Source of the DNA: Rebecca billardiae RCC1528
Taxonomy: Eukaryota; Protista; Haptophyta
DNA: 64,000 bases
Assembly: GCA_965240325.2 (NCBI GenBank)
Contig: OZ251222.1
Span: 1,550,001-1,614,000, forward strand
Reading direction: 5' to 3'
In this document: positions 11,101-43,619 of the stretch, piece by piece
How positions within the stretch are numbered: the stretch's first letter is position 1
Layout of the letters: every line of letters starts with the position of its first letter
Translations under genes and position numbers: made by a program
The notes under the pieces: model-generated
Seen by the model: only the letters and a program-made list of their open reading frames with translations
Told to the model about the DNA's origin: nothing
The model's database searches: none

Positions 11101-14100
11101 GCGCAGGCCAACTCGCTGGTCGGCAGCATCCCCACCGTGATCGGAGTGGCCACGCGCATGCAGTACTTGTACCTCGACACCAACTCGCTCACCGGCACGC
11201 TTCCGACAGAGCTTGGCAGCCACACAGCGGCAGAAGCCCACTCATTTGCGAGGAACTCGCTGGTCGGCACGATCCCTTCTGAGATCGGGCTTGTGAGCCG
11301 GCTGCAGGTGCTGACCCTCTTTAGCAACATGCTCACCGGCACGCTCCCATCGCAGATTGGCACCCTCACAAGTGCTATCAGTGTGCAGATGCAGTCGAAC
11401 TCGGTGAGCGGAGCGCTGCCCACTGAGGTCCTGTTGCTCACCTCGTTGCTGGCGGGGCAGTTCGGGTACGACGGCCTCACGCCGAGCACGACTGCGAACT
11501 GCGTTGATGGTGGCTGCCTGTGCGCAGCCACCCCTTTCAGCTCCAACGGCGGCTTCACCCCTGACCCGGCCGACCTCGTCGCCTGCCCGTCGCCGCCCCC
11601 TTTGCCCCCGCCGAGCCCTCCGAGCCCACCCCCCAGCCCACCGCCCTCACCGTCACCACCATCGCCACCGTCCCTCCCGCCGAGCCCTCCGCCCCCGCCG
11701 GCGCCGCCGGCGCCGCCTCCCAGCCCACCGCCGCTGGCCGTTCCACCGTCGCCACCCTTTCCACCGCCCTCGCCGCCACCCACGCCGCCGCCCTCGCCTC
11801 CGCCGGCGCCAACGTTGCGCGCACAGATGCGCGCAGACTACCCCGAGTGCATCGAGGAGTCTGGCGCCTTCAACGTGGCGGCGTGCAGCAGCATCGGGGG
11901 CGGCGTCGACTACAGCAGCAGCGCGCTCTCGGGCACGGTCCCCACGGAGATCGGCTACATGTCATCGATGCTCGACTTTCGCGTGTTCACCAACGTGCTC
12001 ACGGGTCCGCTTCCGACCGAGGTCGGGTTGCTGCCCAACCTGCAGCTGCTCTACGCGCACGGCAACTCGCTGACAGGGAGCGTCCCATCGCACTTTGGTG
12101 CGGCGACGAGTCTGGTGGTTCTGTCCCTTGGCCCCAACTCGCTGAGCGGCACAGTGCCATCCGAGCTCGGGCAGCTCACGCGGCTGGGGCAGCTCTATCT
12201 CTACGCCAACACGCTGACGGGCACGGTGCCGTCCGAGCTGGGCGCGCTCACGAGCGTCTCCAACCTGTGGATGGAGTCGAACTCGCTGAGCGGGGCGATG
12301 CCGACCGAGGTGCTGCTGCTCACGTCGCTTGGGACGGGCACCTTCACGTACGACGGTCTCACCTCGGCCACGCAGGGCACGTCGTGCGCTGACGGCGGCT
12401 GCGTGTGCGCGGCATCGCCCTTCGCCAACAACACCGCGTTCTCGCCGGACCTCGCCGACCTGCTGACGTGCCCGTCGCCGCCGCCGACGCCGCCGCCTTC
12501 GCCGCCCCCGTCGCCGCCGCCGCCTCCCAACCCACCTCCACGCCCGCCGCCGAGCCCACCTCCGCCGAGCCCGCCAATGCCGCCGCCAAGCCCACCTCCC
12601 TCGCCGCCACCACCCGGCCCACCCTCGCCGCCGCCGTCGCCGCCGCCGAGTCCACCTCCACCGACAAGCCCTCCGCCCAGCTCGCCACCATCGCCTCCGC
12701 CGAGTCCACCGCCCCCACCGCCGTCTCCTCCGCCGGCGCCGACGCTGCGCGCACAGATGCGCGCAGACTACCCCGAGTGCATCGAGGAGTCTGGCGCCTT
12801 CAACGTGGCGGCGTGCAGCAGCATCGGGGGCGGCGTCGACTTCAGCAGCAGCGCGCTCTCGGGCACGGTCCCCACGGAGATCGGCTACATGTCATCGATG
12901 CTAGGCCTTTATGTGTTCACCAACGCGCTCACGGGTCCGCTTCCGACCGAGGTCGGGTTGCTGCCCAACCTGCAGCAGCTCTACGCGCACGGCAACTCGC
13001 TGACGGGGGCCGTCCCATCGCACTTTGGTGCGGCGACGAGTCTGGTGATTCTGTCCCTCGGCCCCAACTCGCTGAGCGGCACAGTGCCATCCGAGCTCGG
13101 GCAGCTCACGCGGCTGCAGGAGCTCTATCTCTACGCCAACGCGCTGACGGGCACGGTGCCGTCCGAGCTCGGCGCGCTCACGAGCGTCTCCAACCTGTGG
13201 ATGGAGTCGAACTCGCTGAGCGGGGCGATGCCGACCGAGGTGCTGCTGCTCACGTCGCTTGGGACGGGCACCTTCACGTACGACGGTCTCACCTCGGCCA
13301 CGCAGGGCACGTCGTGCGCTGACGGCGGCTGCGTGTGCGCGGCATCGCCCTTCGCCAGCAATGCAGGCTTTTCGCCGGACCTCGCCGACCTGCTGACGTG
13401 CCCGTCGCCGCCGCCGACGCCGCCGCCTTCGCCGCCCCCCACGCCGCAGCCACCCCCGTCGCCGCCGCCGCCTCCCACCCCACCTCCAAGCCCGCCGCCG
13501 AGCCCACCTCCGCCGACCCCGCCAATGCCGCCGCCAAGCCCACCTCCCTCGCCGCCACCACCCGGCCCACCCTCGCCGCCGCCCTCGCCGCCGCCGCCGC
13601 CCGCGCCGCCTCCATCCCCGCCGCCGAGCCCGCCGCCCCCCTCCCCTCCGCCGAGGCCTTCCCTGCGTGCTGTGCTGGCGTTCCTCTACCCCGAGTGCTT
13701 TGAGGAGACTGGCTCCTTCAACGAAGCCACGTGCAACGGCATTGGTCCGAGCATCGACTGGTCTGTCGCTTCGCTGACTGGCACGATCCCGACAGAGATT
13801 GGCTACATGGTCGCGCTCGACTCGATGCACATCTTCACCAACTCGCTCACCGGCACCATTCCGACCGAGATCGGAGCGCTCACAGCTCTGACCAATTTCT
13901 TCGTGAATGGAAATGATGTGATTGGTTCTCTCCCCACGGAGGTGCTACTGCTGACCTCGCTGGACCCAGGGGTTGGATTCTGGTACGACGGCATCACCGC
14001 AAGCAACCAGGGCACGGACTGCGCGGATGGCGGCTGCGTGTGCGCTGGCACAAGCTTTGCCAGCAAGGGCAACTTCATCCCAGACCCGGCTGATCTTCTG

Positions 14101-17100
14101 GCCTGCGGGTCGCCGATGCCACCTCCCTCGCCGCCGCCGCCATTGCCACCGCCATCGCCGCCACCCAAGCTGCCGCCGAGCCCGCCGCCAAGCCCGCCGC
14201 CGCCGATGCCGCCGCCGTCACCGCCGCCGCTGTTGCCACCGTCGCCGCCGCCGATGCCGCCGCCGTCGCCGCCGCCGTCGCTGCCGCCGTCGCCGCCGCC
14301 GATGCCGCCGCCGTCGCCGCCGCCGTCGCTGCCGCCGTCACCGCCGCCGATGCCGCCGCCGTCGCCGCCGCCGTCGCAGCCCCCGCTCCCGCCCCCAAGC
14401 CCGCCTCCGCCGCCAACGCCGCCGCCGTCGCCTCCGCCATCATCACCACCGTCCCCACCACCGGGGCCGAAGCCGCCGCCATCGCCGCCACCTACTCCGC
14501 CACCATCACCGCCACCGCCGCTGCCGAAGCCACCGCCGAGCCCACCGCCGCTGCCGCCAACGCCGCCGTCGCCACCGCCGTCCCCGCCACCATCGCCACC
14601 ACCAAGCCCACCACCTTCACCAAGCCCACCGCCGTCGCCACCGCCGTCCCCGCCACCGTCTCCACCACCAAGCCCACCACCTCCACCGAGCCCGCCGCCG
14701 TCACCGCCACCATCCCCGCCACCGTCTCCGCCGCCAAGCCCGCCACCCTCACCGCCGCAGCCACCGCCAAGTCCCCCGCCAAGTCCACCGCCGTCGTCAC
14801 CTCCGCCATCACCACCAGCGCCACCACCATCACCGCCGCCAAGCCCACCACCTCCACCGAGCCCACCTCCGTCACCACCACCGCCACTGCCTCCTCCCAG
14901 CCCACCACCGTCACCACCACCTTCGCCGCCGCCGGCGCCTCCTCCCAGCCCACCACCGTCACCACCACCTTCGCCGCCGCCGCCGGCACCACCTCCTCCA
15001 CCGTCGCCGACCCCATCACCGCCGCCCTCGCCGCCACCGCCCTCGCCGCCGCCGTGGGTGTCGCGTGGCGGTCCGGCGACGCCGTACAACGACACGATCG
15101 AGTACAACAGCGCGCAGAGCGACTTCCAGTCCGACCAGGCGGGCAACACGTTCGACGTGAGCATCGACCTGCTGAGCGGCGACGACACGCTGGTCGTGGG
15201 CTCGGCGGGCGACTCGTCAGCGGGCAACGGCGCGGGCGAGTCCGTGGTCGGCACGATCCTCGGCAGCGAGGGCACCGACGTGATCACCGTCGGCGGCGCC
15301 GGCGACGGCCTGAACCAACCGACGAGCGTGGGCGGCTCGATCGAGCTCACGGTCGACGGCGGCGACGGCGCGGACACGATCACGGTGGGCGGCGCGGGCA
15401 AGGGCGCGTCCAGCTCCGGCGCGCTCGGCGGCTCGAGCAACGTGACGGTGTTCGGAGGCGCCGGCAACGACACGATCAGCGTGGGCGGCGCGGGCCGTGG
15501 CGACTACGGACCCAACACCGGCGGTGACGCGAGCGTGTGGATCGACGGCGGCGACGGCGGCGACACGATCGTCGTGGGCGGCGGTGGCGTCGGCGCGAGG
15601 AGTGGATTTGGCGGCGACATCACCGTGCACGTCGACTCCGGCGCTGGCGACGACTATCTGAGCTTGGGCGGCGGTGGGTTTGGCTACTGGAGCGGCACTG
15701 GCGGCTCGGCCGAGCTGTACGTGAACGCGGGCGAGGGCGACAACACCGTGCTCGTGCCCACCGTGGGCGGTGAGGCGAAGGGCGGTGGCAAGGGCGGCGA
15801 TGGGAGCTTGCACGTGCTCGCCGGCGGCGGCGCGGACACGGTGCAGGTCGGCGGTGGCGGAGAGGGCTACATCGGTGGCCAGTTCGGAGGCGACGCCACC
15901 GTGTACGTGTCCACTGGCGGCGGGGACGATGACATCTCCGTCGGCGGGAGCGGCATGGCCCAATATGGCTCAAAGGGCGGCGGCTTGACCGCCGTGGTGG
16001 ACGCTGGTGACGGTGACAACTCGATCACGATCGGGGGCTCGGGCGGTGCCCTCAGCAGCGCTGAGTCCGGCGCATCGAACGTTGCTGTGACGGCGGGCGA
16101 CGGCGACGACGTGATCGTCGCGGGTGGCGTGGGCTACGCGACTAGTGGCGCCAAGTCAGGCGACTTCACACTTGCGGTCGACGCCGGAGGCGGGAACAAC
16201 GACATCGAGGTGGGCTCAGCGGGCGGCGGCCTAAACGCTCTCCCCGGCTCGCTCGAGGCGACGATCAGCACCCTCGGCGGGAACGACACGATCGTCGTCG
16301 GCGGCGGCGGGTACGGCTATGGCGCCACGGACGCAGGCGACGTTGTCGTGAACGTGTTTGCGGGCGACGGAGACGACAGCGTGGCGATTGGCGGCGGCGG
16401 CGACGCCTCTGCTTCTTCCGCGTGGGGAGGCAGCGTGTACGCGAATGTGAGCGCGACCGGCGGCGATAACGTCGTCGCCATCGGCGACAGCGGGAACGGC
16501 GTAAGCAGCGGCACTGGTGGCCACGTGGACGCTCGGGTCGAGCTCGGCGACGGCGCGGACGTCGTGACCATCGGCGGAGCCACCCCACAGTCTGGCCTCG
16601 GGAGAGGCGGCGATGTGACGTCGTACGTCCGTTCGGGCGGCGGCGCGGACGTCGTGACCATCGGCGACGCGGGCGATGCGGACACTGCCAGTTGGTACAC
16701 TACCAGCTTTAGTCAGGGTGGCAACACGCGCGCGTTCGTGTTTGCGGGCGAGGGCGACGACCGCGTGTACGCGGGCGACGCGGGCGACACGCTGGCTTCG
16801 ATGTTGAACTTCGGCGGCCATGCGTACGCGAACGTGCACGGCGGCGCGGGTGACGACGTTCTGCGCGGCGGCAACGGCGGCGACGCTGTCGCTGGCTCGG
16901 GCGAGGGCGGCGACGCGCTGATCAAGCTGTATGGCGACGACGGCGACGACCGGCTGTACGGCGGCGACGACGGCCTTGCCCTGGAGATGGGCGCCGACCC
17001 GGGCGAGGCGACGACGCACCTGCTCGGCGGCGGCGGCAACGACTACATCCGCGGCGGCACCGGGTACAACTACGCGGCCGGTGCGCGCGTGCGCCCCGCG

Positions 17101-20100
17101 CTGCGCCGCGCCGCACGCGCGCCCTGCGCCTCTGCGCATCCGCGTGCGCGGCACCGGCACGCGCTCACTCGCAGCGGCGCGGGCACACCGGCACACCGCG
17201 CGCTCGGCCGGCAGGCGGCGCCGGCAACGACACGATCCGCGCGGGTGACGGCGGTGCCTACAACAATGTCACCAACGCCTCCGCCACGGCGTACACCATC
17301 GCGCGTGGCGGCGATGGCGACGACATGCTCACCGGCGGCACTGCCGGCGCCGACCCGACCGGCGGCATCAGCGGCGGCACCGCTGTGAGCAAGCTCTACG
17401 GCGACGCCGGCGACGACGTGATCACCGGCGGCGCGGCCGGCGGTGCCGACCCGGGCGCGGTGACCACGTACATCTACGGTGTGCGCCGCGCGTGCAGCGG
17501 CGGGTCGCGGCACCGCCACGGCCAACGCTGAGCGCGCTTCGAGTGTGCGCGTGCGCGCTCGCGCGTGTTCCTGCCCCCGCGCGCGCCACAGGCGGCACCG
17601 GCGAAGACACGATCTACGCAGGCGAAGGCCGCGCCATCATCAGGGGTGCGTGGCCGCTGGCGCGTGCCGCGCGCTCCGCCAGTGCGCCGCCGCGCGTGCG
17701 TCGCTGAGCGCCCTCGCCGCCGCTCGCGCGTCGCGACCGCGCGCACAGGCGGACCGGGCGTGGACACGATCTACACGCGCGACAACGGCTTTGTGGACAC
17801 GCTGTACGTCGAGTGGACGGACTCGTGGGACGTGGACCCGTTCGACATCGTGATCACGCCACCCGCGCCGCCGCCCTCGCCGCCGCCGCCCTCGCCGCCG
17901 CCGTGGGTGTCGCGTGGCGGTCCGGCGACGCCGTACAACGACACGATCGAGTACAACAGCGCGCAGAGCGACTTCCAGTCCGACCAGGCGGGCAACACGT
18001 TCGACGTGAGCATCGACCTGCTGAGCGGCGACGACACGCTGGTCGTGGGCTCGGCGGGCGACTCGTCAGCGGGCAACGGCGCGGGCGAGTCCGTGGTCGG
18101 CACGATCCTCGGCAGCGAGGGCACCGACGTGATCACCGTCGGCGGCGCCGGCGACGGCCTGTACCAAGCGACGAGCGTGGGCGGCTCGATCGAGCTCACG
18201 GTCGACGGCGGCGACGGCGCGGACACGATCACGGTGGGCGGCGCGGGCAAGGGCGCGTTCAGCTCCGGCGCGCTCGGCGGCTCGAGCAACGTGACGGTGT
18301 TCGGAGGCGCCGGCAACGACACGATCAGCGTGGGCGGCGCGGGCCGTGGCGACTACGGACCCAACACCGGCGGTGACGCGAGCGTGTGGATCGACGGCGG
18401 CGACGGCGGCGACACGATCGTCGTGGGCGGCGGTGGCGTCGGCGCGAGGAGTGGATTTGGCGGCGACATCACCGTGCACGTCGACTCCGGCGCTGGCGAC
18501 GACTATCTGAGCTTGGGCGGCGGTGGGTTTGGCTACTGGAGCGGCACTGGCGGCTCGGCCGAGCTGTACGTGAACGCGGGCGAGGGCGACAACACCGTGC
18601 TCGTGCCCACCGTGGGCGGTGAGGCGAAGGGCGGTGGCAAGGGCGGCGATGGGAGCTTGCACGTGCTCGCCGGCGGCGGCGCGGATACGGTGCAGGTCGG
18701 CGGTGGCGGAAAGGTCTACGGCGGTGGCCAGTCCGGAGGCGACGCCACCGTGTACGTGTCCACTGGCGGCGGGGACGACGACATCTCCGTCGGCGGGAGC
18801 GGCATGACCCAGTCTGCTACAAAGGGCGGCGACTTGACCGCCGTGGTCGACGCTGGTGACGGTGACAACTCGATCACGATCGGGGGCTCGGGCGATGCCC
18901 TCAGCAGCGGTGAGTCCGGCGCATCGAACGTTGCTGTGACGGCGGGCGACGGCGACGACGTGATCGTCGCGGGTGGCGTGGGCTACGCGACTAGTGGCGC
19001 CAAGTCAGGCGACTTCACACTTGCGGTCGACGCCGGAGGCGGGAACAACGACATCGAGGTGGGCTCAGCGGGCGGCGGCCGAAGTGCTCGCCCCGGCTCG
19101 CTCGAGGCGACGATCAGCACCCTCGGCGGGAACGACACGATCGTCGTCGGCGGCGGCGGGTACGGCTATGGCGCCACGGACGCAGGCGACGTTGTCGTGA
19201 ACGTGTTTGCGGGCGACGGAGACGACAGCGTGTCGATTGGCGGCGGCGGCGACGCCTCTGCTTCTTCTGCGTGGGGAGGCAGCGTGTACGCGAATGTGAG
19301 CGCGACCGGCGGCGATAACGTCGTCGCCATCGGCGATGGCGGGAACGGCGTGAGCAGCGGCACTGGTGGCCACGTGGACGCTCGGGTCGAGCTCGGCGAC
19401 GGCGCGGACGTCGTGACCATCGGCGGAGCCACCCCACAGTCCGGCCTCGGGAAAGGCGGCGATGTGACGTCGTACGTCCGTTCGGGCGGCGGCGCGGACG
19501 TCGTGACCATTGGCGACGCGGGCGATGCGGACACTTCCATCTTTTTTAGTCAGGGTGGCAACACGCGCGCGTTCGTGTTTGCGGGCGAGGGCGACGACCG
19601 CGTGTACGCGGGCGACGCGGGCGACACGCTGGGTTCGATGTTGAACTACGGCGGCCATGCGTACGCGAACGTGCACGGCGGCGCGGGTGACGACGTTCTG
19701 CGCGGCGGCGATGCCGGCGACGCTGTCGCTGGCTCGGGCGAGGGCGGCGACGCGCTGATCAAGCTGTATGGCGACGACGGCGACGACCGGCTGTACGGCG
19801 GCGACGACGGCCTTGCCCTGGGCGAGGGCGCTCATCCGGGCGAGGCGACGACGCACCTGCTCGGCGGCGGCGGCAACGACTACATCCGCGGCGGCACCGG
19901 GTACAACTACGCGGCCGGTGCGCGCGTGCGCCCCGCGCTGCGCCGCGCCGCACGCGCGCCCTGCGCCTCCGCGCATCCGCGTGCGCGGCACCGGCACGCG
20001 CTCACTCGCAGCGGAGCGGGCACACCGGCACACCGCGCGCTCGGCCGGCAGGCGGCGCCGGCAACGACACGATCCGCGCGGGCGACGGCGGTGCCTACAA

Positions 20101-23100
20101 CAACTTGACCAACGCCTCCGCCACGGCGTACACCATCGCGCGTGGCGGCGATGGCGACGACATGCTCACCGGCGGCACTGCCGGCGCCGACCCGACCGGC
20201 GGCATCAGCGGCGGCACCGCTGTGAGCAAGCTCTACGGCGACGCCGGCGACGACGTGATCACCGGCGGCGCGGCCGGCGGTGCCGACCCGGGCGCGGTGA
20301 CCACGTACATCTACGGTGTGCGCCGCGCGTGCAGCGGCGTGTCGCGGCACCGCCACGGCCAACGCTGAGCGCGCTTCGAGTGTGCGCGTGCGCGCTCGCG
20401 CGTGTGCCTGCCCCCGCGCGCGCCACAGGCGGCACCGGCGAAGACACGATCTACGCAGGCGAAGGCCGCGCCATCATCAGGGGTGCGTGGCCGCTGGCGC
20501 GTGCCGCGCGCTCCGCCAGTGCGCCGCCGCGCGTGCGTCGCTGAGCGCCCTCGGCGCCGCTCGCGCGTCGCGACCGCGCGCACAGGCGGACCGGGCGTGG
20601 ACACGATCTACACGCGCGACAACGGCTTTGTGGACACGCTGTACGTCGAGTGGACGGACTCGTGGGACGTGGACCCGTTCGACATCGTGATCACGCCACC
20701 CGCGCCGCCGCCCTCGCCGCCGCCGCCCTCGCCGCCGCCCTCGCCACCACCCTCGCCGCCGCCACCATCACCGCCGCCGTCGCCACCGCAACCTCCCCCA
20801 TCCCCACCACCGTCATCTCCGCCGCCAACTCCACCGCAACCGCCGCCATCTCCGCCCTCGCCGCCTCCATCACCACCGCCATCCCCTCCTCCGTCGCCGC
20901 CGCCTTCGCCGCCACCTCCGCCTTCGCCGCCTCCATCCCCACCGCCATCCCCACCGCCCTCACCGCCGCCCTCGCCGCCTCCATCACCACCGCCAGCCCC
21001 ACCGCCCTCCCCACCGCCCTCACCGCCGCCATCGCCACCGCCATCCCCACCGCCCTCACCGCCGCCGCCGCCGCCGCCCTCGCCGCCACCTTCCCCACCG
21101 CCGCCACCATCGCCACCGCAGCCGCCAAGCCTACCGCCACCGCCCCCGTCGTCACCACCGCCGTGGGTGTCGCGTGGCGGTCCGGCGACGCCGTACAACG
21201 ACACGATCGAGTACAACAGCGCGCAGAGCGACTTCCAGTCCGACCAGGCGGGCAACACGTTCGACGTGAGCATCGACCTGCTGAGCGGCGACGACACGCT
21301 GGTCGTGGGCTCGGCGGGCGACTCGTCAGCGGGCAACGGCGCGGGCGAGTCCGTGGTCGGCACGATCCTCGGCAGCGAGGGCACCGACGTGATCACCGTC
21401 GGCGGCGCCGGCGACGGCCTGAACCAACCGACGAGCGTGGGCGGCTCGATCGAGCTCACGGTCGACGGCGGCGACGGCGCGGACACGATCACGGTGGGCG
21501 GCGCGGGCACGGGCGCGTTCAGCTCCGGCGCGCTCGGCGGCTCGAGCAACGTGACCGTGTTCGGAGGCGCCGGCAACGACACGATCAGCGTGGGCGGCGC
21601 GGGCCGTGGCGACTACGGACCCAACACCGGCGGTGACGCGAGCGTGTGGATCGACGGCGGCGACGGCGGCGACACGATCGTCGTGGGCGGCGGTGGCGTC
21701 GGCACGAGGAACGGATTTGGCGGCGACATCACCGTGCACGTCGACTCAGGCGCTGGCGACGACCACGTGACCTTGGGCGGCGGTGGGTTTGGCTACTGGG
21801 GCGGGTCTGGCGGCTCGGCCGAGCTGTACGTGAACGCGGGCGAGGGCGACAACACCGTGCTCGTGCCCACCGTGGGCGGTGAGGCTAAGTTCGCTAGCAA
21901 TGGCGGCGATGGGAGCTTGCACGTGCTCACCGGCGGCGGCGCGGACACGGTGCAGGTCGGCGGTGGGGGAGATGACAACGGAGGCAACGGTGGCGACGCC
22001 ACCGTGTACGTGTCCACTGGCGGAGGGGACGACGACATCTCCGTCGGCAGCGCCGGTGACAGCCCATTTGGCCAAGGTGGCCAGTTGTCTGCCGTGATCG
22101 ACGCCGGCGACGGTGACAACACGATCACGCTCGGCGGCGGTGGGTATGCCTCTGGCGGCGCCGCTGGCTCAGCCAGCTTTGCCGTGACGGCGGGCGACGG
22201 CGACGACGTGATCGCCACGGGCGACGCGGGGTCTGCCGTCGGGGGTTCCGTCACAGGCGGCGGCCTCACGCTCGTGGTCGACGCGGGGGGCGGGAACAAC
22301 GACATCACTGTCGGCTCGCCGGGCGACGGGACTTCCGGCGGCAGAGCTGGCTCGATCGAGGCGACGATCACCACCCTCGGCGGCAACGACACGATTGTCA
22401 TCGGCGGTGGCGGGGAGTTTGAATTCGGCAGCGCGCGCGGGGGAGGCAGGGTCGTGAACGTGTTTGCGGGCGACGGCGATGACAGCGTGACGGTCGGTGA
22501 CGCCGGCGAGGCTGCTTCGGGCGCGTTTCCCGGCGCCACGATCGTGAACGTGAGCGCGACTGGCGGTGACAACACGGTCGTCATCGGCGACGGGGGAGAG
22601 GCGCTTCGTGGGGGATCTGGCTCCGATGTGAACGCGCGCGTCGAGCTGGGCGATGGCGCGGACGACGTGACCATCGGCGACGCGGGCTACGGCCAAAATG
22701 GAGGGCGCGGCGGCGATGTGTTCTCTTATGTGCGAACTGGCGGCGGCGCGGACGTGGTGACCATCGGCGACGCGGGCGACGCGGGGGGCTCCGCTAGTTG
22801 GGGGGGTGGGAGCTCGGGCGGCAACACGCGCGCGATCGTGCTGGCGGGCGAGGGCAACGACCGCGTGTCCGTCGGCGACGCGGGCGACACGCTGGGGTCC
22901 GATGATTCGCCTGGCGTGATGTACGCGCACGTGCACGGCGGCGCGGGTGACGACGTTCTGCGCGGCGGCAACGGCGGCGACGCTGTCACTGGCTCGGGCG
23001 AGGGCGGCGACGCGCTGATCAAGCTGTATGGCGACGACGGCGACGACCGGCTGTACGGCGGCGACGACGGCCTGGCCCTGGAGATGGGCGCCGACCCGGG

Positions 23101-26100
23101 CGAGGCGACGACGCACCTGCTCGGCGGCGGCGGCAACGACTACATCCGCGGCGGCACCGGGTACAACTACGTGGCCGGTGCGCGCGTGCGCCCCACACTG
23201 CGCCGCGCTGCGCCGCGCCGCGCCGCACGCGCGCCCTGCGCCTCTGCGCATCCGCGTGCGCGGCACCGGCACGCGCTCACTCGCAGCGGCGCGGGCACAC
23301 CGGCACACCGCGCGCTCGGCCGGCAGGCGGCGCCGGCAACGACACGATCCGCGCGGGTGACGGTGGTGCCTACAACAACGTGACCAACGCCTCCGCCACG
23401 GCGTACACCATCGCGCGTGGCGGCGATGGCGACGACATGCTCACCGGCGGCACTGCCGGCGCCGACCCGACCGGCGGCATCAGCGGCGGCACCGCTGTGA
23501 GCAAGCTCTACGGCGACGCCGGCGACGACGTGATCACCGGCGGCGCGGCCGGCGGTGCCGACCCGGGCGCGGTGACCACGTACATCTACGGTGTGCGCCG
23601 CGCGTGCAGCGGCGTGTCGCGGCACCGCCACGGCCAACGCTGAGCGCGCTTCGAGTGTGCTCGCGCGTGTGCCTGCCCCCGCGCGCGCCACAGGCGGCAC
23701 CGGCGAAGACACGATCTACGCAGGCGAAGGCCGCGCCATCATCAGGGGTGCGTGGCCGCTGGCGCGTGCCGCGCGCTCCGCCAGTGCGCCGCCGCGCGTG
23801 CGTCGCTGAGCGCCCTCGCCGCCGCTCGCGCGTCGCGACCGCGCGCACAGGCGGACCGGGCGTGGACACGATCTACACGCGCGACAACGGCTTTGTGGAC
23901 ACGCTGTACGTCGAGTGGACGGACTCGTGGGACGTGGACCCGTTCGACATCGTGATCACGCCACCCGCGCCGCCGCCCTCGCCGCCGCCGCCCTCGCCGC
24001 CGCCGTGGGTGTCGCGTGGCGGTCCGGCGACGCCGTACAACGACACGATCGAGTACAACAGCGCGCAGAGCGACTTCCAGTCCGACCAGGCGGGCAACAC
24101 GTTCGACGTGAGCATCGACCTGCTGAGCGGCGACGACACGCTGGTCGTGGGCTCGGCGGGCGACTCGTCAGCGGGCAACGGCGCGGGCGAGTCCGTGGTC
24201 GGCACGATCCTCGGCAGCGAGGGCACCGACGTGATCACCGTCGGCGGCGCCGGCGACGGCCTGAACCAACCGACGAGCGTGGGCGGCTCGATCGAGCTCA
24301 CGGTCGACGGCGGCGACGGCGCGGACACGATCACGGTGGGCGGCGCGGGCAAGGGCGCGTTCAGCTCCGGCGCGCTTGGCGGCTCGAGCAACGTGACGGT
24401 GTTCGGAGGCGCCGGCAACGACACGATCAGCGTGGGCGGCGCGGGCCGTGGCGACTACGGACCCAACACCGGCGGTGACGCGAGCGTGTGGATCGACGGC
24501 GGCGACGGCGGCGACACGATCGTCGTGGGTGGCGGTGGCGTCGGCGCGAGGGATGGGTTGGGCGGCGACATCACCGTGCACGTCGACTCAGGCGCTGGCG
24601 ACGACCACGTGACCTTGGGCGGCGGTGGGCTTGGCTACTACGGTGCGTCTGGCGGCTCGGCCGAGCTGTACGTGAACGCGGGCGAGGGCGACAACACCGT
24701 GCTCGTGCCCACCGTGGGCGGTGAGGCTAGGAGCAGTGGCAATGGCGGCGATGGGAGCTTGCACGTGCTCACCGGCGGCGGCGCGGACACGGTGCAGGTC
24801 GGCGGTGGTGGAGACGCCAATTCTGGTGGCAATCTCGGAGGTGACGCCACCGTCTACGTGTCCACTGGCGGAGGGGACGACGACATCTCCGTCGGCAGCG
24901 GAGGTGACGGCACATCTGGCGGCACGGGTGGCCAGCTGTCTGCTGTGATCGACGCCGGCGACGGTGACAACACGATCACGCTCGGCGGCGCTGGGTATGC
25001 CTCTTTCAGCACCACTGGCTCAGCCAGCTTTGCCGTGACGGCGGGCGACGGCGACGACGTGATCGCCACGGGCGACGCGGGGTCTGCCGCAGGCTCCCTG
25101 TTTCCCGCCGATCTCACGCTCGTGGTCGACGCGGGGGGCGGGAACAACGACATCACTGTCGGCTCGCCGGGCGACGGGACCTTCGGCGCCAGAGCTGGCT
25201 CGATCGAGGCGACGATCACCACCCTCGGCGGCAACGACACGATTGTCATCGGCGGTGGCGGGGAGCTGAATTCTGGCTCGCGCGGGGGGGGCAGGGTCGT
25301 GAACGTGTTTGCGGGCGACGGCGATGACAGCGTGACGGTCGGTGACGCCGGCGCGGCTTATGCGGGCTCGAATGCTGGCGCCACGATCGTGAACGTGAGC
25401 GCGACTGGCGGCGACAACACGGTCGTCATCGGCGACGGGGGAGAGGCGCTTAATGGGGCATCTGGCTCCGATGTGAACGCGCGCGTCGAGCTGGGCGATG
25501 GCGCGGACGACGTGACCATCGGCGACGCGGGCTACGGCCAAAATGGAGCGCGCGGCGGCGATGTGTTTTCGTATGTGCGAACTGGCGGCGGCGCGGACGT
25601 GGTGACCATCGGCGACGCGGGCGACGCGGGGGCCTCCGCTGGCTGGGGTGGCAACACGCGCGCGATCGTGCTGGCGGGCGAGGGCGACGACCGCGTGTAC
25701 GTCGGCGACGCGGGCGACACGCTGGGGTCCGTTTTTGCGCCTGGCGTGATGTACGCGCACGTGCGCGGCGGCGCGGGTGACGACGTTCTGCGCGGCGGCA
25801 ACGGCGGCGACGCGGTCGTTGGCACGGCCGAGGGCGGCGACGCGCTGATCAAGCTGTATGGCGACGACGGCGACGACCGGCTGTACGGCGGCGACGACGG
25901 CCTGGCCCTGGAGATGGGCGCCGACCCGGGCGAGGCGACGACGCACCTGCTCGGCGGCGGCGGCAACGACTACATCCGCGGCGGCACCGGGTACAACTAC
26001 GCGGCCGGTGCGAGCGTGCGCCCCGCGCTGCGCCGCGCCGCACGCGCGCCCTGCGCCTCTGCGCATCCGCGTGCGCGGCACCGGCACGCGCTCACTCGCA

Positions 26101-29100
26101 GCGGCGCGGGCACACCGGCACACCGCGCGCTCGGCCGGCAGGCGGCGCCGGCAACGACACGATCCGCGCGGGTGACGGCGGTGCCTACAACAACTTGACC
26201 AACGCCTCCGCCACGGCGTACACCATCGCGCGTGGCGGCGATGGCGACGACATGCTCACCGGCGGCACTGCCGGCGCCGACCCGACCGGAGGCATCAGCG
26301 GCGGCACCGCTGTGAGCAAGCTCTACGGCGACGCCGGCGACGACGTGATCACCGGCGGCGCGGCCGGCGGTGCCGACCCGGGCGCGGTGACCACGTACAT
26401 CTACGGTGTGCGCCGCGCGTGCAGCGGCGTGTCGCGGCACCGCCACGGCCAACGCTGAGCGCGCTTCGAGTGTGCTCGCGCGTGTGCCTGCCCCCGCGCG
26501 CGCCACAGGCGGCACCGGCGAAGACACGATCTACGCAGGCGAAGGCCGCGCCATCATCAGGGGTGCGTGGCCGCTGGCGCGTGCCGCGCGCTCCGCCAGT
26601 GCGCCGCCGCGCGTGCGTCGCTGAGCGCCCTCGCCGCCGCTCGCGCGTCGCGACCGCGCGCACAGGCGGACCGGGCGTGGACACGATCTACACGCGCGAC
26701 AACGGCTTTGTGGACACGCTGTACGTCGAGTGGACGGACTCGTGGGACGTGGACCCGTTCGACATCGTGATCACGCCACCCGCGCCGCCGCCCTCGCCGC
26801 CGCCGCCCTCGCCGCCGCCGTGGGTGTCGCGGGGCGGTCCGGCGACGCCGTACAACGACACGATCGAGTACAACAGCGCGCAGAGCGACTTCCAGTCCGA
26901 CCAGGCGGGCAACACGTTCGACGTGAGCATCGACCTGCTGAGCGGCGACGACACGCTGGTCGTGGGCTCGGCGGGCGACTCGTCAGCGGGCAACGGCGCG
27001 GGCGAGTCCGTGGTCGGCACGATCCTCGGCAGCGAGGGCACCGACGTGATCACCGTCGGCGGCGCCGGCGACGGCCTGAACCAACCGACGAGCGTGGGCG
27101 GCTCGATCGAGCTCACGGTCGACGGCGGCGACGGCGCGGACACGATCACGGTGGGCGGCGCGGGCAAGGGCGCGTTCAGCTCCGGCGCGCTTGGCGGCTC
27201 GAGCAACGTGACGGTGTTCGGAGGCGCCGGCAACGACACGATCAGCGTGGGCGGCGCGGGCCGTGGCGACTACGGACCCAACACCGGCGGTGACGCGAGC
27301 GTGTGGATCGACGGCGGCGACGGCGGCGACACGATCGTCGTGGGTGGCGGTGGCGTCGGCGCGAGGGATGGGTTGGGCGGCGACATCACCGTGCACGTCG
27401 ACTCAGGCGCTGGCGACGACCACGTGACCTTGGGCGGCGGTGGGCTTGGCTACTACGGTGCGTCTGGCGGCTCGGCCGAGCTGTACGTGAACGCGGGCGA
27501 GGGCGACAACACCGTGCTCGTGCCCACCGTGGGCGGTGAGGCTAGGAGCGGTGGCAATGGCGGCGATGGGAGCTTGCACGTGCTCACCGGCGGCGGCGCG
27601 GACACGGTGCAGGTCGGCGGTGGTGGAGACGCCAATTCTGGTGGCAATCTCGGAGGTGACGCCACCGTCTACGTGTCCACTGGCGGAGGGGACGACGACA
27701 TCTCCGTCGGCAGCGGAGGTGACGGCACATCTGGCGGCAACGGTGGCCAGCTGTCTGCTGTGATCGACGCCGGCGACGGTGACAACACGATCACGCTCGG
27801 CGGCGCTGGGTATGCCTCTGGCGGCGCCGCTGGCTCAGCCAGCTTTGCCGTGACGGCGGGCGACGGCGACGACGTGATCGCCACGGGCGACGCGGGGTCT
27901 GCCGCCGCAAGCTCCCAGTCTCCCGGCGGTCTCACGCTCGTGGTCGACGCGGGGGGCGGGAACAACGACATCACTGTCGGCTCGCCGGGCGACGGGACTT
28001 CCGGCGCCAGAGCTGGCTCGATCGAGGCGACGATCACCACCCTCGGCGGCAACGACACGATTGTCATCGGCGGTGGCGGGGAGCTGAAGTTTGGCGCGCG
28101 CGAGGGGGGCAGGGTCGTGAACGTGTTTGCGGGCGACGGCGATGACAGCGTGACGGTCGGTGACGCCGGCGAGGCTTATTGGGGCTCGAATGCTGGCGCC
28201 ACGATCGTGAACGTGAGCGCGACTGGCGGTGACAACACGGTCATCATCGGCGACGGGGGAGAGGCGCTTGGTGGGGGATCTGGCTCCGATGTGAACGCGC
28301 GCGTCGAGCTGGGCGATGGCGCGGACGACGTGACCATCGGCGACGCGGGCTACGGCCAAAATGCAGCGCGCGGCGGCGATGTGTTCTCGTATGTGCGAAC
28401 TGGCGGCGGCGCGGACGTGGTGACCATCGGCGACGCGGGCGCCGCGGGGGCCTCCAATGGCTGGGGTGGCAACGCACGCGCGATCGTGCTGGCGGGCGAG
28501 GGCGACGACCGCGTGTACGTCGGCGACGCGGGCGACACGCTGGGGTCCGTTTTTGCGCCTGGCGTGATGTACGCGCACGTGCACGGCGGCGCGGGTGACG
28601 ACGTTCTGCGCGGCGGCAACGGCGGCGACGCGGTCGTTGGCACGGCCGAGGGCGGCGACGCGCTGATCAAGCTGTATGGCGACGACGGCGACGACCGGCT
28701 GTACGGCGGCGACGACGGCCTGGCCCTGGAGATGGGCGCCGACCCGGGCGAGGCGACGACGCACCTGCTCGGCGGCGGCGGCAACGACTACATCCGCGGC
28801 GGCACCGGGTACAACTACGCGGCCGGTGCGCGCGTGCGCCCCACACTGCGCCGCGCTGCGCCGCGCCGCGCCGCACGCGCGCCCTGCGCCTCTGCGCATC
28901 CGCGTGCGCGGCACCGGCGCGCGCTCACTCGCAGCGGAGCGGGCACACCGCGCGCTCGGCCGGCAGGCGGCGCCGGCAACGACACGATCCGCGCGGGTGA
29001 CGGTGGTGCCTACAACAACGTGACCAACGCCTCCGCCACGGCGTACACCATCGCGCGTGGCGGCGATGGCGACGACATGCTCACCGGCGGCACTGCCGGC

Positions 29101-32100
29101 GCCGACCCGACCGGCGGCATCAGCGGCGGCACCGCTGTGAGCAAGCTCTACGGCGACGCCGGCGACGACGTGATCACCGGCGGCGCGGCCGGCGGTGCCG
29201 ACCCGGGCGCGGTGACCACGTACATCTACGGTGTGCGCCGCGCGTGCAGCGGCGTGTCGCGGCACCGCCACGGCCAACGCTGAGCGCGCTTCGAGTGTGC
29301 GCGCGCGTGTGCCTGCCCCCGCGCGCGCCACAGGCGGCACCGGCGAAGACACGATCTACGCAGGCGAAGGCCGCGCCATCATCAGGGGTGCGTGGCCGCT
29401 GGCGCGTGCCGCGCGCTCTGCCAGTGCGCCGCAGCGCAGGTTGTGTCGCTGAGCGCCCTCGGCGCCGCTCGCGCGTCGCGACCGCGCGCACAGGCGGTCC
29501 GGGCGTGGACACGATCTACACGCGCGACAACGGCTTTGTGGACACGCTGTACGTCGAGTGGACGGACTCGTGGGACGTGGACCCGTTCGACATCGTGATC
29601 ACGCCACCCGCGCCGCCGCCCTCGCCGCCGCCGCCCTCGCCGCCACCACCACCATCACCGCCGCCACCATCGCCGCCGCCGTCGCCGCCGCCACCTCCGT
29701 CTCCGCCGCCATCGCCGCCGCCGCCGAGCCCACCGCCATCGCCACCCCCCTCGCCACCGCCGTCACCGCCGCCCTCGCCACCGCCATCGCCTCCGCCACC
29801 GCCACCGCCATCGCCTCCGCCTTCACCGCCGCCATCAACGCCACCGGTGCCGCCTCCATCCCCACCGCCATCGCCGCCGCCATCTCCTCCGCCATCGCCG
29901 CCGCCATCGCCACCTCCGCCAAGCCCACCGCCATCGCCACCTCCCTCGCCTCCGCCGTCACCGCCGCCATCACCGCCGCCATCACCGCCGCCCTCGCCAC
30001 CGCCTTCGCCACCTCCGCCGAGCCCACCGCCATCGCCACCTCCCTCGCCTCCGCCGTCACCGCCGCCCTCGCCACCGCCATCGGCGCCGCCCTCACCACC
30101 GCCATCGCCCCCGCCATCGCCACCGCCATCACCGCCGCCCTCGCCACCGCCACCGCCTCCGCCTTCACCGCCGCCATCGCCGCCACCGCTGCCGCCTCCA
30201 TCACCACCGCCATCCCCGCCGCCATCGCCTCCGCCCTCGCCGCCGCCCTCGCCACCGCCACCGAGCCCACCGCCTTCGCCACCGCCATCACCACCGCCAT
30301 CGCCTCCGCCCTCGCCGCCCCCACCCAGCCCGCCCCCGCCCCCGCCGCCCTCGCCGCCACCATCGCCGCCGCCCTCGCCGCCGCCGAGCCCACCGCCGCC
30401 GCCGCCGCCATTGCCACCGCCATCACCACCGCCATCACCTCCGCCCTCGCCGCCCCCACCCAGCCTGCCTCCGCCCCCGCCGCCCTCGCCGCCACCATCG
30501 CCGCCGCCCTCGCCGCCGCCGAGCCCACCGCCGCTGCCACCGCCATCGCCACCGCCATCGCCACCACCATCGCCTCCGCCTTCACCGCCGCCGCCACCGC
30601 CGTCGCCACCGCCATCGCCACCGCCATCGCCGCCGCCGTCGCCGCCCCCGCCCAGCCCGCCACCGCCACCGCCACCGTCGCCGCCGCCATCGCCGCCGCC
30701 ATCGCCGCCGCCGAGCCCACCGCCGCCGCCACCGCCATCGCCTCCGCCATCGCCGCCGCCATCGCCGCCGCCATCGCCGCCCCCGCCCAGCCCGCCTCCG
30801 CCCCCGCCGCCATCGCCGCCGCCATCGCCGCCGCCATCGCCGCCGCCGAGCCCTCCGCCGCTGCCACCGCCATCGCCACCGCCATCGCCACCGCCATCGC
30901 CTCCGCCTTCACCGCCGCCGCCACCGCCGTCGCCGCCGCCATCGCCGCCGCCATCGCCGCCGCCATCGCCGCCCCCGCCCAGCCCGCCCCCGCCCCCGCC
31001 GCCCTCGCCGCCACCATCGCCGCCGCCATCGCCACCGCCGAGCCCTCCGCCGCTGCCACCGCCATCGCCACCGCCATCGCCTCCGCCATCGCCTCCGCCA
31101 TCGCCGCCCCCACCCAGCCCGCCCCCGCCCCCGCCACCCTCGCCGCCGCCATCGCCGCCACCATCGCCTCCGCCAAGCCCACCACCGCCGCCACCGCCAT
31201 CGCCACCGCCATCGCCTCCGCCCTCGCCGCCCCCACCCAGCCCGCCACCGCCGCCGCCGCCGTCGCCGCCGCCTTCACCGCCACCATCGCCGCCCCCGCC
31301 GAGCCCACCGCCCTCTCCGCCGCCCTCACCGCCACCTAGTCCGCCGCCACCGAGTCCCCCACCCAGCCCGCCACCCACGCCGCCGCCGTTCCCACCTCCT
31401 AGCCCGCCTCCACCGAGCCCGCCGCCATCTCCACCGCCGGCGCCGCCGCCCTCGCCGCCGCCCAGCCCGCCACCACCGAGCGCACCACCGAGCCCACCCC
31501 CGTTGCCGCCACCAGCCCCCCCACCATCGCCTCCACCATCGCCCCCGCCGTCGCCAATGCCTCCACCGTTCCCCGCGGGCCGACCGCGCCCACCGCCTTC
31601 GCCGCCACCCACGCCTCCGCCCAGCCCGCCTCCGCCCAGCCCACCGCCGTCGCCACCGCCACCATCCTTCCCTCCCAGCCCTCCGCCAAGCCCACCACCG
31701 GTCGTCGGGTGCGCGGACCCGGGTGCGCTCAACTACAACTCGCTCGCGCGCGAGTGCAACCAGCGCACGTGCTGCCAGTACCCCATCTTCGGCTGCCTCG
31801 ACCCGAACGCCACCAACTTCCGCTCGGACGCGACCTCGCAGCCCGCGGACGTCGAGTGCCTGTACACGTATCCGGGCTGCACGGACAGCTGGGCGGCGGA
31901 CTACGACTCGACCGCGACCGTGTACAACGGCTGCGCGCCGTACACGCTCGGCTGCACAGACCCCACGGCGAGGAACTTCGACTCGATCGCGGACACGGAC
32001 GACGGCACGTGCGTGTACGACGTGCTCGGCTGCACCATCTCGACCGCGTGCGACTTCGACCCGAGCGCGACCGTGTTCACCGCGTGCGACACAACGAGCT

Positions 32101-35100
32101 GCCGCGGCTGCACCGACCCGTCGGCCGGCAACTACGACTCGAACGCGACGCGCGACGACGGGGGCTGCGTCTACCTGGGGTGCACGAGCCCCTCCGCAAC
32201 CAACTACGACTCGACGGCGACGCGCTTCAGCTCGTGCGTGTTCGCGCGCGTGGGCTGCACGGACACGCGCGCGTTCAACTACGACCCCGCCGCGAGCGTG
32301 GACTCTGGCGAGTGCGTCATCTTCGGGTGCAACGTGCCCTCCGCGCTGAACTACGACGTGGACGCGACGGCGAACGACGGGAACTGCACCTTTGCGGTGC
32401 GCGGCTGCCTCGACTCGAGCGCGCTCAACTTCCGCTCGGACGCCGAGGTCGAGAGCTTTGGGTGCGAGTACGCCATCCTCGGCTGCACGTCCTCGCTCGC
32501 GGCCAACTACAACCCGAACGCCACCGTGTACGACGGCAGCTGCCAGTTCACCGAGAAGAAGTGCGGCAACGAGGACGCGCTCAACTACGACTCGCGCGCC
32601 GCGGCCGGTCAGATCGACCCGAGCGTGTGCGTGATGCCCGCGCCCGGCTGCCGCAACCCCGCCGCCGTCAACTACGACTCGACGGCCAACGTACAGCCTG
32701 CCGGCGCAGCTTACCGCTGCGTGCTGCCGCGCGTCGGCTGCACCGACCCAGGCGCCGTGAACTACGACTCGCGCGCGACCGTCGAGGCCGTGCCGAGCAC
32801 GTGCGTCGTCGCGCTCGAGGGCTGCACCGACCCGAGCGCGCTCAACTACGACTCGAGCGCGAACACGCTGCGCGCGGGCTCGTGCGTGCGCGCCGTCGTC
32901 GGCTGCGTCGACAGCAGCGCGCTCAACTTCCGGAGCGACGCCAACGTGGGCTCGGCCGACTGCATCTATCCGCGGCTCGGCTGCATGTCGTCGCGCGCGA
33001 TCAACTACGACTCGCTCGCGACGGTGAGGGACGGCAGCTGCATCTTTGTGGTCGACGGCTGCACCGACTCTGCCGCGCTCAACTTCAACCCGGCCGCGAC
33101 GGCTGACGACGGCAGCTGCACGCTGCCTGTGCCGGGCTGCATGTCGACGAGGGCGATCAACTACAACTCGCTCGCGACCGTCGACGACCGCACGTGCGTC
33201 TTCCCGGTGGTGGGCTGCACCGACTCGAGGGCGCTCAACTACCGCCCCGCCGCGACGGTGGACTCTGGCGGCTGCATCGCCGCGCGCCGCGGCTGCACCT
33301 CGCGCAACGCGCTCAACTACGCGCCGACTGCCAACGTGGACGACGGCAGCTGCGTCGCCAAGGTGTTCGGGTGCACCAAGACGGCCGCGACGAACTACAA
33401 CTCGGCTGCCAACGTCGAGTCCAGCCCGAGCACGTGCCTCGTCGAGGGGTGCACCGACCCCAACGCGCGCAACTTCAACGCGCGCGCCACGGTCAACGAC
33501 GGCTCGTGCGTCGCCAAGCTGCGCGGCTGCTCGGACCCGCAGGCGGTGAACTACATCCCGGGCGCCGAGCTGTACGCGCGGTGCGACTACAAGGGGTGCA
33601 CGCGCACGGACGCGCTCAACTACGACGCGCGCGCCAACATCGCGAGCCCGACCGACTGCAGGTTCGCCTCGGCGAGCGGCGTCGTGCAGGTGGTCGCGCA
33701 GCACCGCTCGTGCGCCGTGCAGGCGGTGCGCGCCGACGGCGTCGTCGTCGGCTCCGGCACGACGCTCCAGTCCGGCGTGTTCGCGATGCTGTACTCGGAC
33801 GCGTTCGAGACGCTGCGCGTGCGCCCGTCGGCGCAGTGCCGCGACACGATCAACGGCGCGGCGCTCCGCTTCACCTTGCTCGCGCCCTTCGGCTCGCAGG
33901 TCGTGTCTCCGCTCACGACGATGTACATGCGCATGCTCGAGCGCGGGCTGAGCGAGGAGGGCGCGCAGCTCAACCTGTGGCGCTGCTTCGACGTGTACCC
34001 GCTGATCGACATCACGACGTACCGGCCGATCAAGCAGTACCTCGACGGCGACCCGAACGCGCTGCACGCCGTGCGCGCGTCCGTGCTGATCAGCGAGCTC
34101 CTCAACCGGCTGCTCGCGCTGCTCGCTCCGTACGTGCAGCTCGCGGCGGACGTCGAGCGGAGCGCGAGCGCGGCGCTGATCGACCGCTGCCTCGCGGCGC
34201 CGGACGACCTGGTGGCGCCGGTGCTCGCGAACGCGACAGCGGCGCTCGAGCTCGCGCTCGCCGTGCGCGACGGCGCGGGCCTCACGCCCGGCACCGGGCC
34301 CAACGCCGGCGCCATGCTCGACATGGCTCAGGCGCTCGTGTCGCGCGTGCAGGAGCTCGCCACCATCTGGGACGGCCCCGGCTACTTTGAGCTGCCGCCG
34401 GAGTCGGCGGCGGCATCGGCGGCGGCAGCGCGGCGCGCGGCGGCCGTGGCCTCGTCCGCCCTTCTCCGCGCGCCGCAGGTCTCGGCGGCCTCGACCGAGT
34501 GCTTCTCGAGCGCGCTGCAGGAGACGTACCAGGCGTCGGCGTGCCCCGTCGCCGGCTGCACCGACGACGAGGCGCAGAACTTCGCGCCCGACGCGACGGT
34601 GAGCGACGACAGCTGCGAGTACACGGGCTGCACCAACATCAACGCGACCAACTACGTGCCGCGCGCGACGATCGACGACGGCAGCTGCGTCGTCGAGGTG
34701 ATCGGCTGCCGCGACCCGCTCGCGACCAACTACAACGCCAACGCGACGTCGCAGGGGAGCGCGGCGTGCGACTACACCGTGCTCGGCTGCACGCTCTCGT
34801 CCGCGGCCAACTTCGTGCCCGAGGCGACGAAGAACGACGGCTCGTGCACGTTCGTCGCGCTCGGTTGCATCGACCCGACCGCGCTCAACTACGACCCGAC
34901 CGCCAACCGCGACGACGGCACGTGCGTCGCGCCGGCGCGCGGCTGCACCGACTCCCGTGCGGACAACTACGACCCGAGCGCCGCGCTCGACGACGGCTCG
35001 TGCGTGCTCGGCGGCTGCCGCAACTCGCTCGCAGACAACTACAACTCGGCCGCCACGATCAATGACGGCAGCTGCAGCTTTGGCGTGAGCGGCTGCGTCG

Positions 35101-38370: not shown

Positions 38371-38614
38371 TGATTGCGTCGCGTGGCCGTCAGTCACGCC
38401 ACAGCTAGCTTTGCCACTTATTTGGCCCGCGCCCCCGCCTATGTAGCAGCAGTCGTCTCACGGCAGTTTATTCGTCTTAACATGACAGTCATCATCGTCG
38501 TCAGCACATCATATTGATGCCTGCGATTGCGCGCGCCTGCTGATGCTGATCACCTGATGACGACACTGCCGAGCCTCTCGTCCTCACTGCCAAGTGCCAG
38601 ACTCACGGTGGCAC

Positions 38615-43121: not shown

Positions 43122-43619
43122 CTCACCCACGAGAAGATGTCGGGCGAGAAGATGCGTCGAATGATCAGCAATCCACACCCCGCCCGAGACAGGGCTGGTC
43201 GTGAACCAGCACGATCCTCACCCACCAGTGGCACTGCGGTACAAGACGAAGACGACGAAGATTCGTCGTCAAAAAGTGGCGGCTAATCGGGATGAGATCC
43301 CAGGTAAACTCACGTCGTAATGGATCACTTCACGGGATCCTCCCTGATCAACAGGTGATATGGACCCTGTTCATGAGCGAGTACAGTTTTTCATATTGAA
43401 TAATTGAGCCACGCGGAGCTCGTCAACCAGCAGCTTACTACTCTTATAAGCTCAACTACCGCAGATCGCATCTCGTTCATTCGTACTTAGTCTCAAAGGC
43501 GGGTACTGTATGATAGAAACCACAGCCAACCGTCGTCGTCAGTCAAGTCGTCAGCCCAGCCGGAACAATTGTTTGCCGCCCTTCAGAACAAGGGCGCAAG
43601 GTCAACTGTTCAAAGAGCT

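Follow-up and report, generated by a model that had tools for sequence, protein, structure and literature searches.

Five RTX-like modules of predicted beta-solenoid fold, with near-identical introns and divergent loop tips, in a giant gene of the haptophyte Rebecca billardiae RCC1528

In the RTX beta-roll, every 18-aa turn is built from two nonapeptides (PMC3034196). Between the primate red and green opsin genes, introns are more alike than exons and divergence peaks around presumed selected sites, a published signature known as the 'peak of divergence' (PMC3924837). The repeats of the fungal HNWD NLRs het-d and het-e evolve in concert, and a single predicted interaction surface holds their variation (PMC1805685); the ROCO-LRR and NB-ARC-TPR candidate receptors of Ectocarpus, repeat proteins of an alga, are diversified at the positions that face the ligand (PMC3341825); and spider silk genes are giant genes of repeated exon-intron units with introns about 98% alike (PMC9779670). 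The evolutionary process considered below is already known; the scaffold, a looped 30-residue RTX-like solenoid, appears undescribed, and a literature search of incomplete coverage found no haptophyte RTX proteins.

The module array and its host gene

Five modules (U1–U5), about 2.8 kb apiece with three introns, lie inside one giant protein of more than about 9,200 aa, encoded in the 64-kb stretch of DNA analysed here (the window); the sample is these five copies in a single assembly. In every module the three introns are phase-1 GT-AG introns and the exons are open. Positions are those of the window.

5799–5932, + strand: candidate start of the host gene, with a signal-peptide-like sequence as read by eye
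7580–15054, + strand: plant-type LRR arrays and Ser-Pro linkers, in the same exon as U1
11812–12465 and 12742–13395, + strand: duplicated LRR cassette
15055–17858, + strand: module U1 (core class A); exon part 15055–17080; introns 17081–17214, 17479–17591, 17646–17748
17904–20695, + strand: module U2 (core class A); exon part to 19917; introns 19918–20051, 20316–20428, 20483–20585
20696–21163, + strand: Ser-Pro linker of 156 aa, longer than the other three, where classes A and B adjoin
21164–23960, + strand: module U3 (core class B; class-A-like at core edges); exon part to 23177; introns 23178–23326, 23591–23693, 23748–23850
24006–26775, + strand: module U4 (core class B; its exon 1 part is the one modelled); exon part to 26007; introns 26008–26141, 26406–26508, 26563–26665
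26821–29603, + strand: module U5 (core class B); exon part to 28825; introns 28826–28966, 29231–29333, 29388–29493
17859–17903, 23961–24005 and 26776–26820, + strand: the three other linkers between modules, identical 15-aa peptides
29604–36893, + strand: long Ser-Pro stalk, then about 41 Cys-containing repeats of the GCxD..A.NY type
37013–37093, + strand: predicted transmembrane exon, a hydrophobic stretch followed by RRRK
37270–38370, + strand: exon predicted to encode the cytoplasmic tail; low-complexity, repeated sequence with the stop codon at its end

Judged from its sequence, the product is probably a type I membrane protein with the modules in its ectodomain; a possible upstream exon from 5119 makes the 5' end of the gene uncertain. 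The two copies of the LRR cassette differ mostly at or beside exposed strand positions, the Cys repeats are of a type common to marine bacterial and haptophyte proteins (haptophyte matches: two, distant), and no toxin or pore-forming domain was seen. The host alga and this gene region are very GC-rich.

A Pfam scan of module exon 1 gave no hit, and none to PF00353 at E 0.001. Homologue searches found no orthologue of the modules; what they returned was confined to distantly related RTX-type proteins of bacteria, most of them spaced at 9 or 18 residues, and every named sequence match was a bacterial protein of RTX or calcium-binding type. The scaffold had no close relative among 1.8 billion representative proteins (best homologue E 4e-12). 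One relative, P0047, has some 30-residue spacings and was set aside, its spacers resembling degenerate nonapeptide turns and not the GxG...GG loop. Atlas searches gave RTX clusters of low recognition, which serve as leads only.

Predicted fold and the surface formed by the loop tips

The model of U4 exon 1, with confident scores (pLDDT 82), predicts a parallel beta-solenoid in which 21 coils of about 30 aa follow one another; each coil would run through a long strand, an RTX-type Gly/Asp turn and a short strand into a single loop. The loops recur at the same register from coil to coil and would thus stack along one edge of the solenoid. The model agrees with the original prediction of a beta-solenoid scaffold whose variation is concentrated in loop tips, and in it most within-class variable sites share the one loop per coil. 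Within classes, 81 of 96 variable columns are in loop tips, which make up 181 of 678 columns (27%), and 89 of the 96 are in loops, their placement on one surface being deduced from topology; gap columns fall in tips in 16 of 17 cases. The first 180 codons hold just four variable amino-acid columns (87, 89, 116 and 119), each in a loop tip. The loops had been described as rich in Y/W/F/S/G: the aromatic part holds for the tips (Y/W/F 7–11% vs 2–3%; p 0.001–0.054 per copy), but overall Gly/Ser/Ala make up the bulk of the loops. Each exon 1 carries 5–7 strict and 20–23 relaxed RTX-type motifs, with four more in exons 2–4, and the turn Asp/Asn and next Gly are invariant among copies in coils 5–19. 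Calcium may be bound at these RTX-type turns, to go by their motifs.

Divergence, exchange and selection among the copies

Between copies, introns are 0.6–3.3% different, plus small indels, exons 2–4 are 0.2–0.9% different, with one variable residue, and non-loop module ends are less than 1% different; the near-constancy of the first ~170 codons, last exons and introns in all five copies, reported earlier, was borne out by this comparison, and all fifteen loop strings quoted with it are present as written in the translation. In the core loop tips, 8–43% of non-degenerate sites differ. The mean non-degenerate divergence of the 10 pairs is 0.318 in core tips, 0.062 in the rest of the core and 0.017 in introns, so that a peak in the coding core stands above the flanking introns and loop divergence exceeds intron divergence, as had been anticipated; the rest of the core overall spans 0.062–0.123, and the observed value for silent framework sites is 0.12. 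The cores form two classes, U1–2 (A) and U3–5 (B), separated by dS ~0.43 and dN ~0.25 over columns 181–600. Because these classes also differ in strands, the core framework is not constant: the picture of an unchanged framework with variable loops fits the ends and introns, but not the core, whose framework splits into two old classes. Within a class, tips differ at 8–25% of non-degenerate sites, compared with 0.4–3.6% of silent sites 20–40 bp off and 0.6–3% in introns; silent divergence is also raised in tips.

Sequence exchange has taken place between the module copies, in keeping with the recombination proposed earlier: mosaic tracts and incompatible site patterns are present, and ends and introns differing by 0–3% adjoin the strongly diverged core. 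U3 is class A-like at the core edges and class B-like in the centre (17:16 vs 20:218 sites, with the edge/centre boundary picked after seeing the data), and U5 shares sites of coils 9–17 with U3 (p<=0.005; mosaic significance is given as permutation p-values). Shared 16-mers revealed no coils shuffled out of register between modules.

The framework is under purifying selection (omega 0.2–0.5 in a purpose-written MG94 fit). Tip omega from the same fit is about 1.9 in two close pairs, which is borderline (LRT p 0.055–0.066); it is 1.3–1.9 within classes, near 1 for U1–U2 and U3–U4, and about 0.8 between classes. In close pairs, 0-fold tip sites differ at 44/495 vs 5/142 at 4-fold tip sites (p 0.033) and 15/682 in introns (p 3e-7), while 4-fold framework sites differ at 2/445. 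Restricted to single-change codons, the tip test gives p 0.10–0.25; omega >1 loses significance once codons with several changes are removed, and the likelihood test does not reach significance either. U4–U5 have an excess of adjacent double changes, a kind of change that can mimic selection (10.1101/165969). Silent sites of the GC-rich host gene are not neutral: GC at 4-fold sites is 0.71–0.75 in core loops, 0.90 in core framework and 0.89–1.0 in the ends. Diversifying selection, as originally proposed, draws on the tip omega of the close pairs, against borderline p-values (0.03–0.25) and the between-class value; it is likely for the loop tips, but not proven.

The explanation that we favour, and think probable, is that gene conversion makes the modules alike except at the loop tips, where selection maintains differences, giving a five-surface recognition product. 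On this reading a giant type I membrane protein would display in its ectodomain a series of RTX-like parallel beta-solenoids joined by proline linkers; introns, ends and much of the framework would stay alike through ordinary gene conversion and unequal crossing-over; tracts that erase tip differences in coils 5–19 would be selected against, and fresh tip changes would probably be favoured. Silent sites beside tips would be carried along, leaving a broad core divergence island with a sharper peak at each tip. The likely product would present five binding surfaces in a row, each with its own specificity, perhaps for microbes, viruses, prey or partner cells. In a toy simulation with core-only protection built in and arbitrary parameters, fitting only without mismatch-dependent tract termination, protected tips and ~100-bp tracts gave 0.38 for tips, 0.20 for silent framework, 0.057 for constrained framework and 0.02 for introns, close to the observed 0.32, 0.12, 0.062 and 0.017; with neutral tips, at least fivefold intron divergence arose in 0/90 runs (maximum 2.9). 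The pattern also fits the opsin-type 'peak of divergence' signature, and the differences between the two LRR cassette copies at or beside exposed strand positions point the same way.

History with no ongoing selection for difference is the rather unlikely but most serious alternative: the A and B cores would have diverged at separate loci or as alleles, and crossovers or long conversions within the shared ends would then have joined them; the tips would be free of constraint and would mutate more readily (G-richness, slippage, double mutations). Tip omega near 1 for U1–U2, U3–U4 and between classes speaks for it, as do doublets and a low transition bias in tips and the higher silent divergence of tips than framework (5/142 vs 2/445, p 0.011). 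A one-off import accounts for A vs B, however, and not for within-class tip divergence of 8–25% beside silent divergence of 0.4–3.6%; moreover, the simulated neutral tips behaved like introns, loops in coils 1–4 are equally G-rich yet hardly vary, and tip changes have no CpG excess. An assembly artefact, in which consensus collapse or polishing made the ends identical or two haplotypes were concatenated, is extremely improbable. The repeats are long, near-identical and very GC-rich, both classes stand side by side and no read spans the array, but the ends of every copy carry private SNPs and indels, by which collapse is unlikely, all exons stay in frame over 16 indel columns, and two haplotypes of one copy are ruled out because five distinct cores exist. 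Contigs from one public low-depth run reproduce copy-specific alleles: one matches bases 25207–25429 of U4 exactly, U4-specific loops are exact, and U1/U2-type and U1–3-type alleles also occur; copy order and number rest on the assembly.

Targeted diversification, in which conserved ends would be recombination handles and loop-sized patches would come from silent donors elsewhere, as in msp2 and possibly within a clone, is very unlikely in our estimation. It would explain a variable core between conserved flanks, changes clustered by loop (dispersion p 0.002–0.045 in 3/4 pairs) and silent changes that travel with the tips. Against it, a search for donor cassettes by blastn and tblastn found nothing related in the 64-kb window, no off-register shared 16-mers involve tips, the spectrum is not adenine-directed, loop variants resemble stepwise descendants of each other, and the few contigs from the public run show only alleles already in the window; the targeted recombination suggested originally thus gained no positive support. 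A eukaryotic system of receptors or surface antigens on a bacterial-type beta-roll, with this gene as its expression site, donor patches directed into loops and cell-to-cell variation, seems to us just as doubtful. A diversity-generating retroelement target was also considered and rejected, all six substitution types being present with no adenine bias and no template in the window.

If gene conversion and selection act together as we favour, the array would be a clear case of the two at a 90-bp period within one exon. Should the tips set binding specificity, the modules would amount to a naturally occurring beta-roll scaffold of antibody-like kind, and recognition of viruses, bacteria, prey or mates by a unicellular alga would have in them a candidate mechanism open to testing.

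Comparison with known systems

The modules share with RTX proteins (PF00353) the Gly/Asp-rich nonapeptide repeats, the GGxGxDxUx-type turns and the modelled parallel beta-solenoid. They differ in having one nonapeptide per ~30-aa coil, with a long loop at the other edge, and so lack two consecutive nonapeptides per turn; nor is type I secretion with C-terminal repeats indicated in a spliced eukaryotic gene with internal modules, a signal-peptide-like start and a transmembrane exon, whose product is predicted to be membrane-anchored. The top structural match of the modelled module is curli CsgA (Z 27.5, rmsd 8.3), owing to the overall outline of a two-sheet solenoid; PDB 3P4G, a Ca2+-dependent beta-helical ice-binding domain, matches with Z 21.3, rmsd 3.4, 276 aligned residues and 25% identity.

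Anaplasma msp2/p44 likewise has conserved flanks round a variable core, and the donor pseudogenes or single expression site of that system were not found here within the window. The Ectocarpus receptors differ from the modules, in which 21 coils share one exon with no one-repeat-per-exon shuffling and with no GTPase or NB-ARC domain. Concerted evolution and variation on one surface are common to HNWD and the modules; HNWD varies at four WD40 positions, whereas the modules would vary in extracellular beta-solenoid loops with indels, exchange a 2.8-kb four-exon unit without shuffling coils out of register, and give borderline evidence of the positive selection that is established in HNWD. In spider silk the coding repeats are homogenised too, whereas the module coding core stays divergent. 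With the opsins the modules share the pattern of divergence peaks, here between domains of one gene, over ~1.3 kb and as about 15 peaks at 90-bp spacing.

The host gene and its modules

All five RTX-like modules (U1 to U5) lie in a single plus-strand gene. Every module exon is open, each module has its three phase-1 GT-AG introns, and all 15 loop strings quoted in the original prediction were found.

Near 5799 (+): signal-peptide-like start; 5' end of the gene uncertain
5932-7580 (+): N-terminal tip of the gene, a run of small LRR exons, each very short and holding about one repeat
Upstream of the modules (+): large exon that carries LRR arrays of plant type together with Ser-Pro linkers
15055-17858, 17904-20695, 21164-23960, 24006-26775, 26821-29603 (+): modules U1 to U5, strung on Ser-Pro linkers, then a long Ser-Pro stalk
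31701-36581 (+): Cys-containing repeats of the GCxD..A.NY type, about 41
37013-37093 (+): predicted transmembrane exon
End at 38370 (+): predicted cytoplasmic tail

About 9,190 codons separate position 7580 from the exon preceding the membrane segment; no toxin, pore-forming or enzyme domain was seen in the host gene. The sole long inter-module linker (20696-21163, 156 aa; the three others are identical 15-aa linkers) lies exactly at the boundary between the two module classes, A (U1, U2) and B (U3-U5), and may mark the crossover by which they were brought together. The Cys repeats have no Pfam match but homologues in the thousands, many in proteins with PF18962 or FG-GAP domains and two haptophyte entries included; a tandem repeat (37706-38102; 171 bp, 2.3 copies) lies in the predicted cytoplasmic tail. 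Elsewhere in the window, a long ORF (6-4058) carries AbiEii-like, Ham1-like and RNA-ligase domains, and a minus-strand gene (38600-43200) resembles, as judged by eye, a CLC-type chloride channel or transporter with CBS domains.

The copy-specific sequences, though not the array order, are supported by a public sequencing run of one sample (depth 2-5, in contig form only), which may be related to the source of the assembly. One contig matches U4 exactly across 25207-25429, where U5 differs from U4 at 9 bases, U3 at 18 and class A at 62; one contig carries the intron-2 insert of U1/U2, and one the U1-3 allele at 24377.

Variation between the copies

Loop tips were delimited by sequence motif, as the residues lying between the conserved glycines found at the base of every loop, independently of variability. 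Of the 678 columns 181 belong to tips, and these contain 81 of the 96 columns that vary within a class, as well as 16 of the 17 columns with gaps. In the tips, mean divergence over ten pairs is 0.318 for non-degenerate sites and 0.262 for 4-fold sites; the corresponding values are 0.062 and 0.123 in the remaining core and 0.001 and 0.008 in non-tip ends, and introns stand at 0.017. In coils 5-19 no copy departs from the others at the turn Asp/Asn or at the Gly that ends the short strand. Aromatic residues, part of the enrichment originally described, are two to four times as frequent in tips as elsewhere in the core, but about 40% of tip composition is Gly/Ser.

Pairwise differences are 0.6-3.3% in introns and 0.2-0.9% in exons 2-4, and codons 1-180 contain four variable residues, every one within a loop tip. 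Columns 181-600 divide the copies into classes A and B (dS about 0.43, dN about 0.25 between classes; smaller within them), so that, set against the near-identical ends and introns, the core is old and the ends are young. The feature is real; the original prediction had left this contrast of old core and young ends unseparated from the loop pattern. Most intron divergence of U5 is a cluster of private changes with a 3-bp insert in intron 3 (29415-29450), as if a short stretch had come from a different source.

The two copies of a duplicated LRR cassette in the same gene (11812-12465 and 12742-13395) differ by 14 amino acids, mostly in or next to the exposed strand positions of their first LRRs, and a long identical stretch follows; this bias to exposed positions is like the tip pattern of the modules.

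Predicted fold of the modules

Homologue search and structure modelling covered module exon 1, which can be parsed into 21 coils of about 30 residues each (long strand, Gly/Asp turn, short strand, loop). The predicted beta-solenoid scaffold was recovered as a parallel beta-solenoid both from the single sequence (pLDDT 63) and from the five copies (pLDDT 82, pTM 0.85). Since every coil's loop comes after the same strand, topology, rather than coordinates, requires all loops of the modelled solenoid to line up along a single edge. Top structural matches were curli CsgA (Z 27.5, rmsd 8.3) and 3P4G, a Ca2+-dependent RTX-derived ice-binding beta-helix (Z 21.3, rmsd 3.4, 25% identity); in Foldseek the CyaA RTX domain was the sole match under E 0.001, with a poor TM-score. 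Homologue searches returned distant bacterial RTX-type proteins only (best E 4e-12). Canonical RTX rolls have two nonapeptides per turn (PMC3034196), whereas the modules have an RTX turn at one edge and a long loop at the other.

Selection, exchange and known systems

The pattern is probably best explained by gene conversion together with selection keeping the loop tips different: conversion would homogenise the copies, and selection would retain the tip differences. The main rival, copy history with relaxed, mutable loops, is considered less likely. Framework omega is 0.2-0.5, indicating purifying selection. In two independent close pairs, divergence at non-degenerate tip sites (44/495) clearly exceeds that in introns (15/682) and at framework 4-fold sites (2/445), and narrowly that at 4-fold sites within the tips themselves (5/142, p 0.033). 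The diversifying selection originally proposed is borderline by likelihood (tip omega 1.9 in close pairs, p 0.055-0.066; 1.3-1.4 once U3 is included; 0.8 between classes), and the targeted recombination proposed beside it gained no positive evidence: no donor cassettes were found within the 64-kb window, no off-register templates for the tips, and no adenine or CpG bias among the changes. There is some excess of adjacent double changes; with multi-change codons dropped, the tip ratio is still near 2 and not significant (p 0.10-0.25). Neutral tips would be expected to behave like introns, and in 90 runs of a toy simulation they reached at most 2.9 times intron divergence. With mismatch-sensitive conversion the introns were first to escape; with protected core tips and short tracts the observed ordering of divergence was recovered. 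The simulation supports conversion with selection without proving it: core-only protection is assumed, a fit was reached only when conversion was insensitive to mismatches, and import of a foreign core in a single event lies outside the model.

Informative sites mostly favour the tree ((U1,U2),U3,(U4,U5)); eleven conflict with it, 5 of them in introns and exon 2, and intron indels conflict too (insert common to U3 and U5). U3 is a mosaic with A-like core edges and a B-like centre, and U5, across coils 9-17, has tip sites in common with it. At 4-fold sites the GC content declines from 0.89-1.0 in the ends to 0.90 in the core framework and 0.71-0.75 in core loops, a gradient that would fit GC-biased conversion acting most weakly on loops.

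The homogenised, iterated introns of the modules have a precedent in silk genes (PMC9779670). The module pattern resembles that of fungal HNWD repeats (PMC1805685) and of brown-algal candidate receptors (PMC3341825), and is the same as the peak-of-divergence signature already published (PMC3924837); the distinctive element here is the looped beta-roll scaffold.
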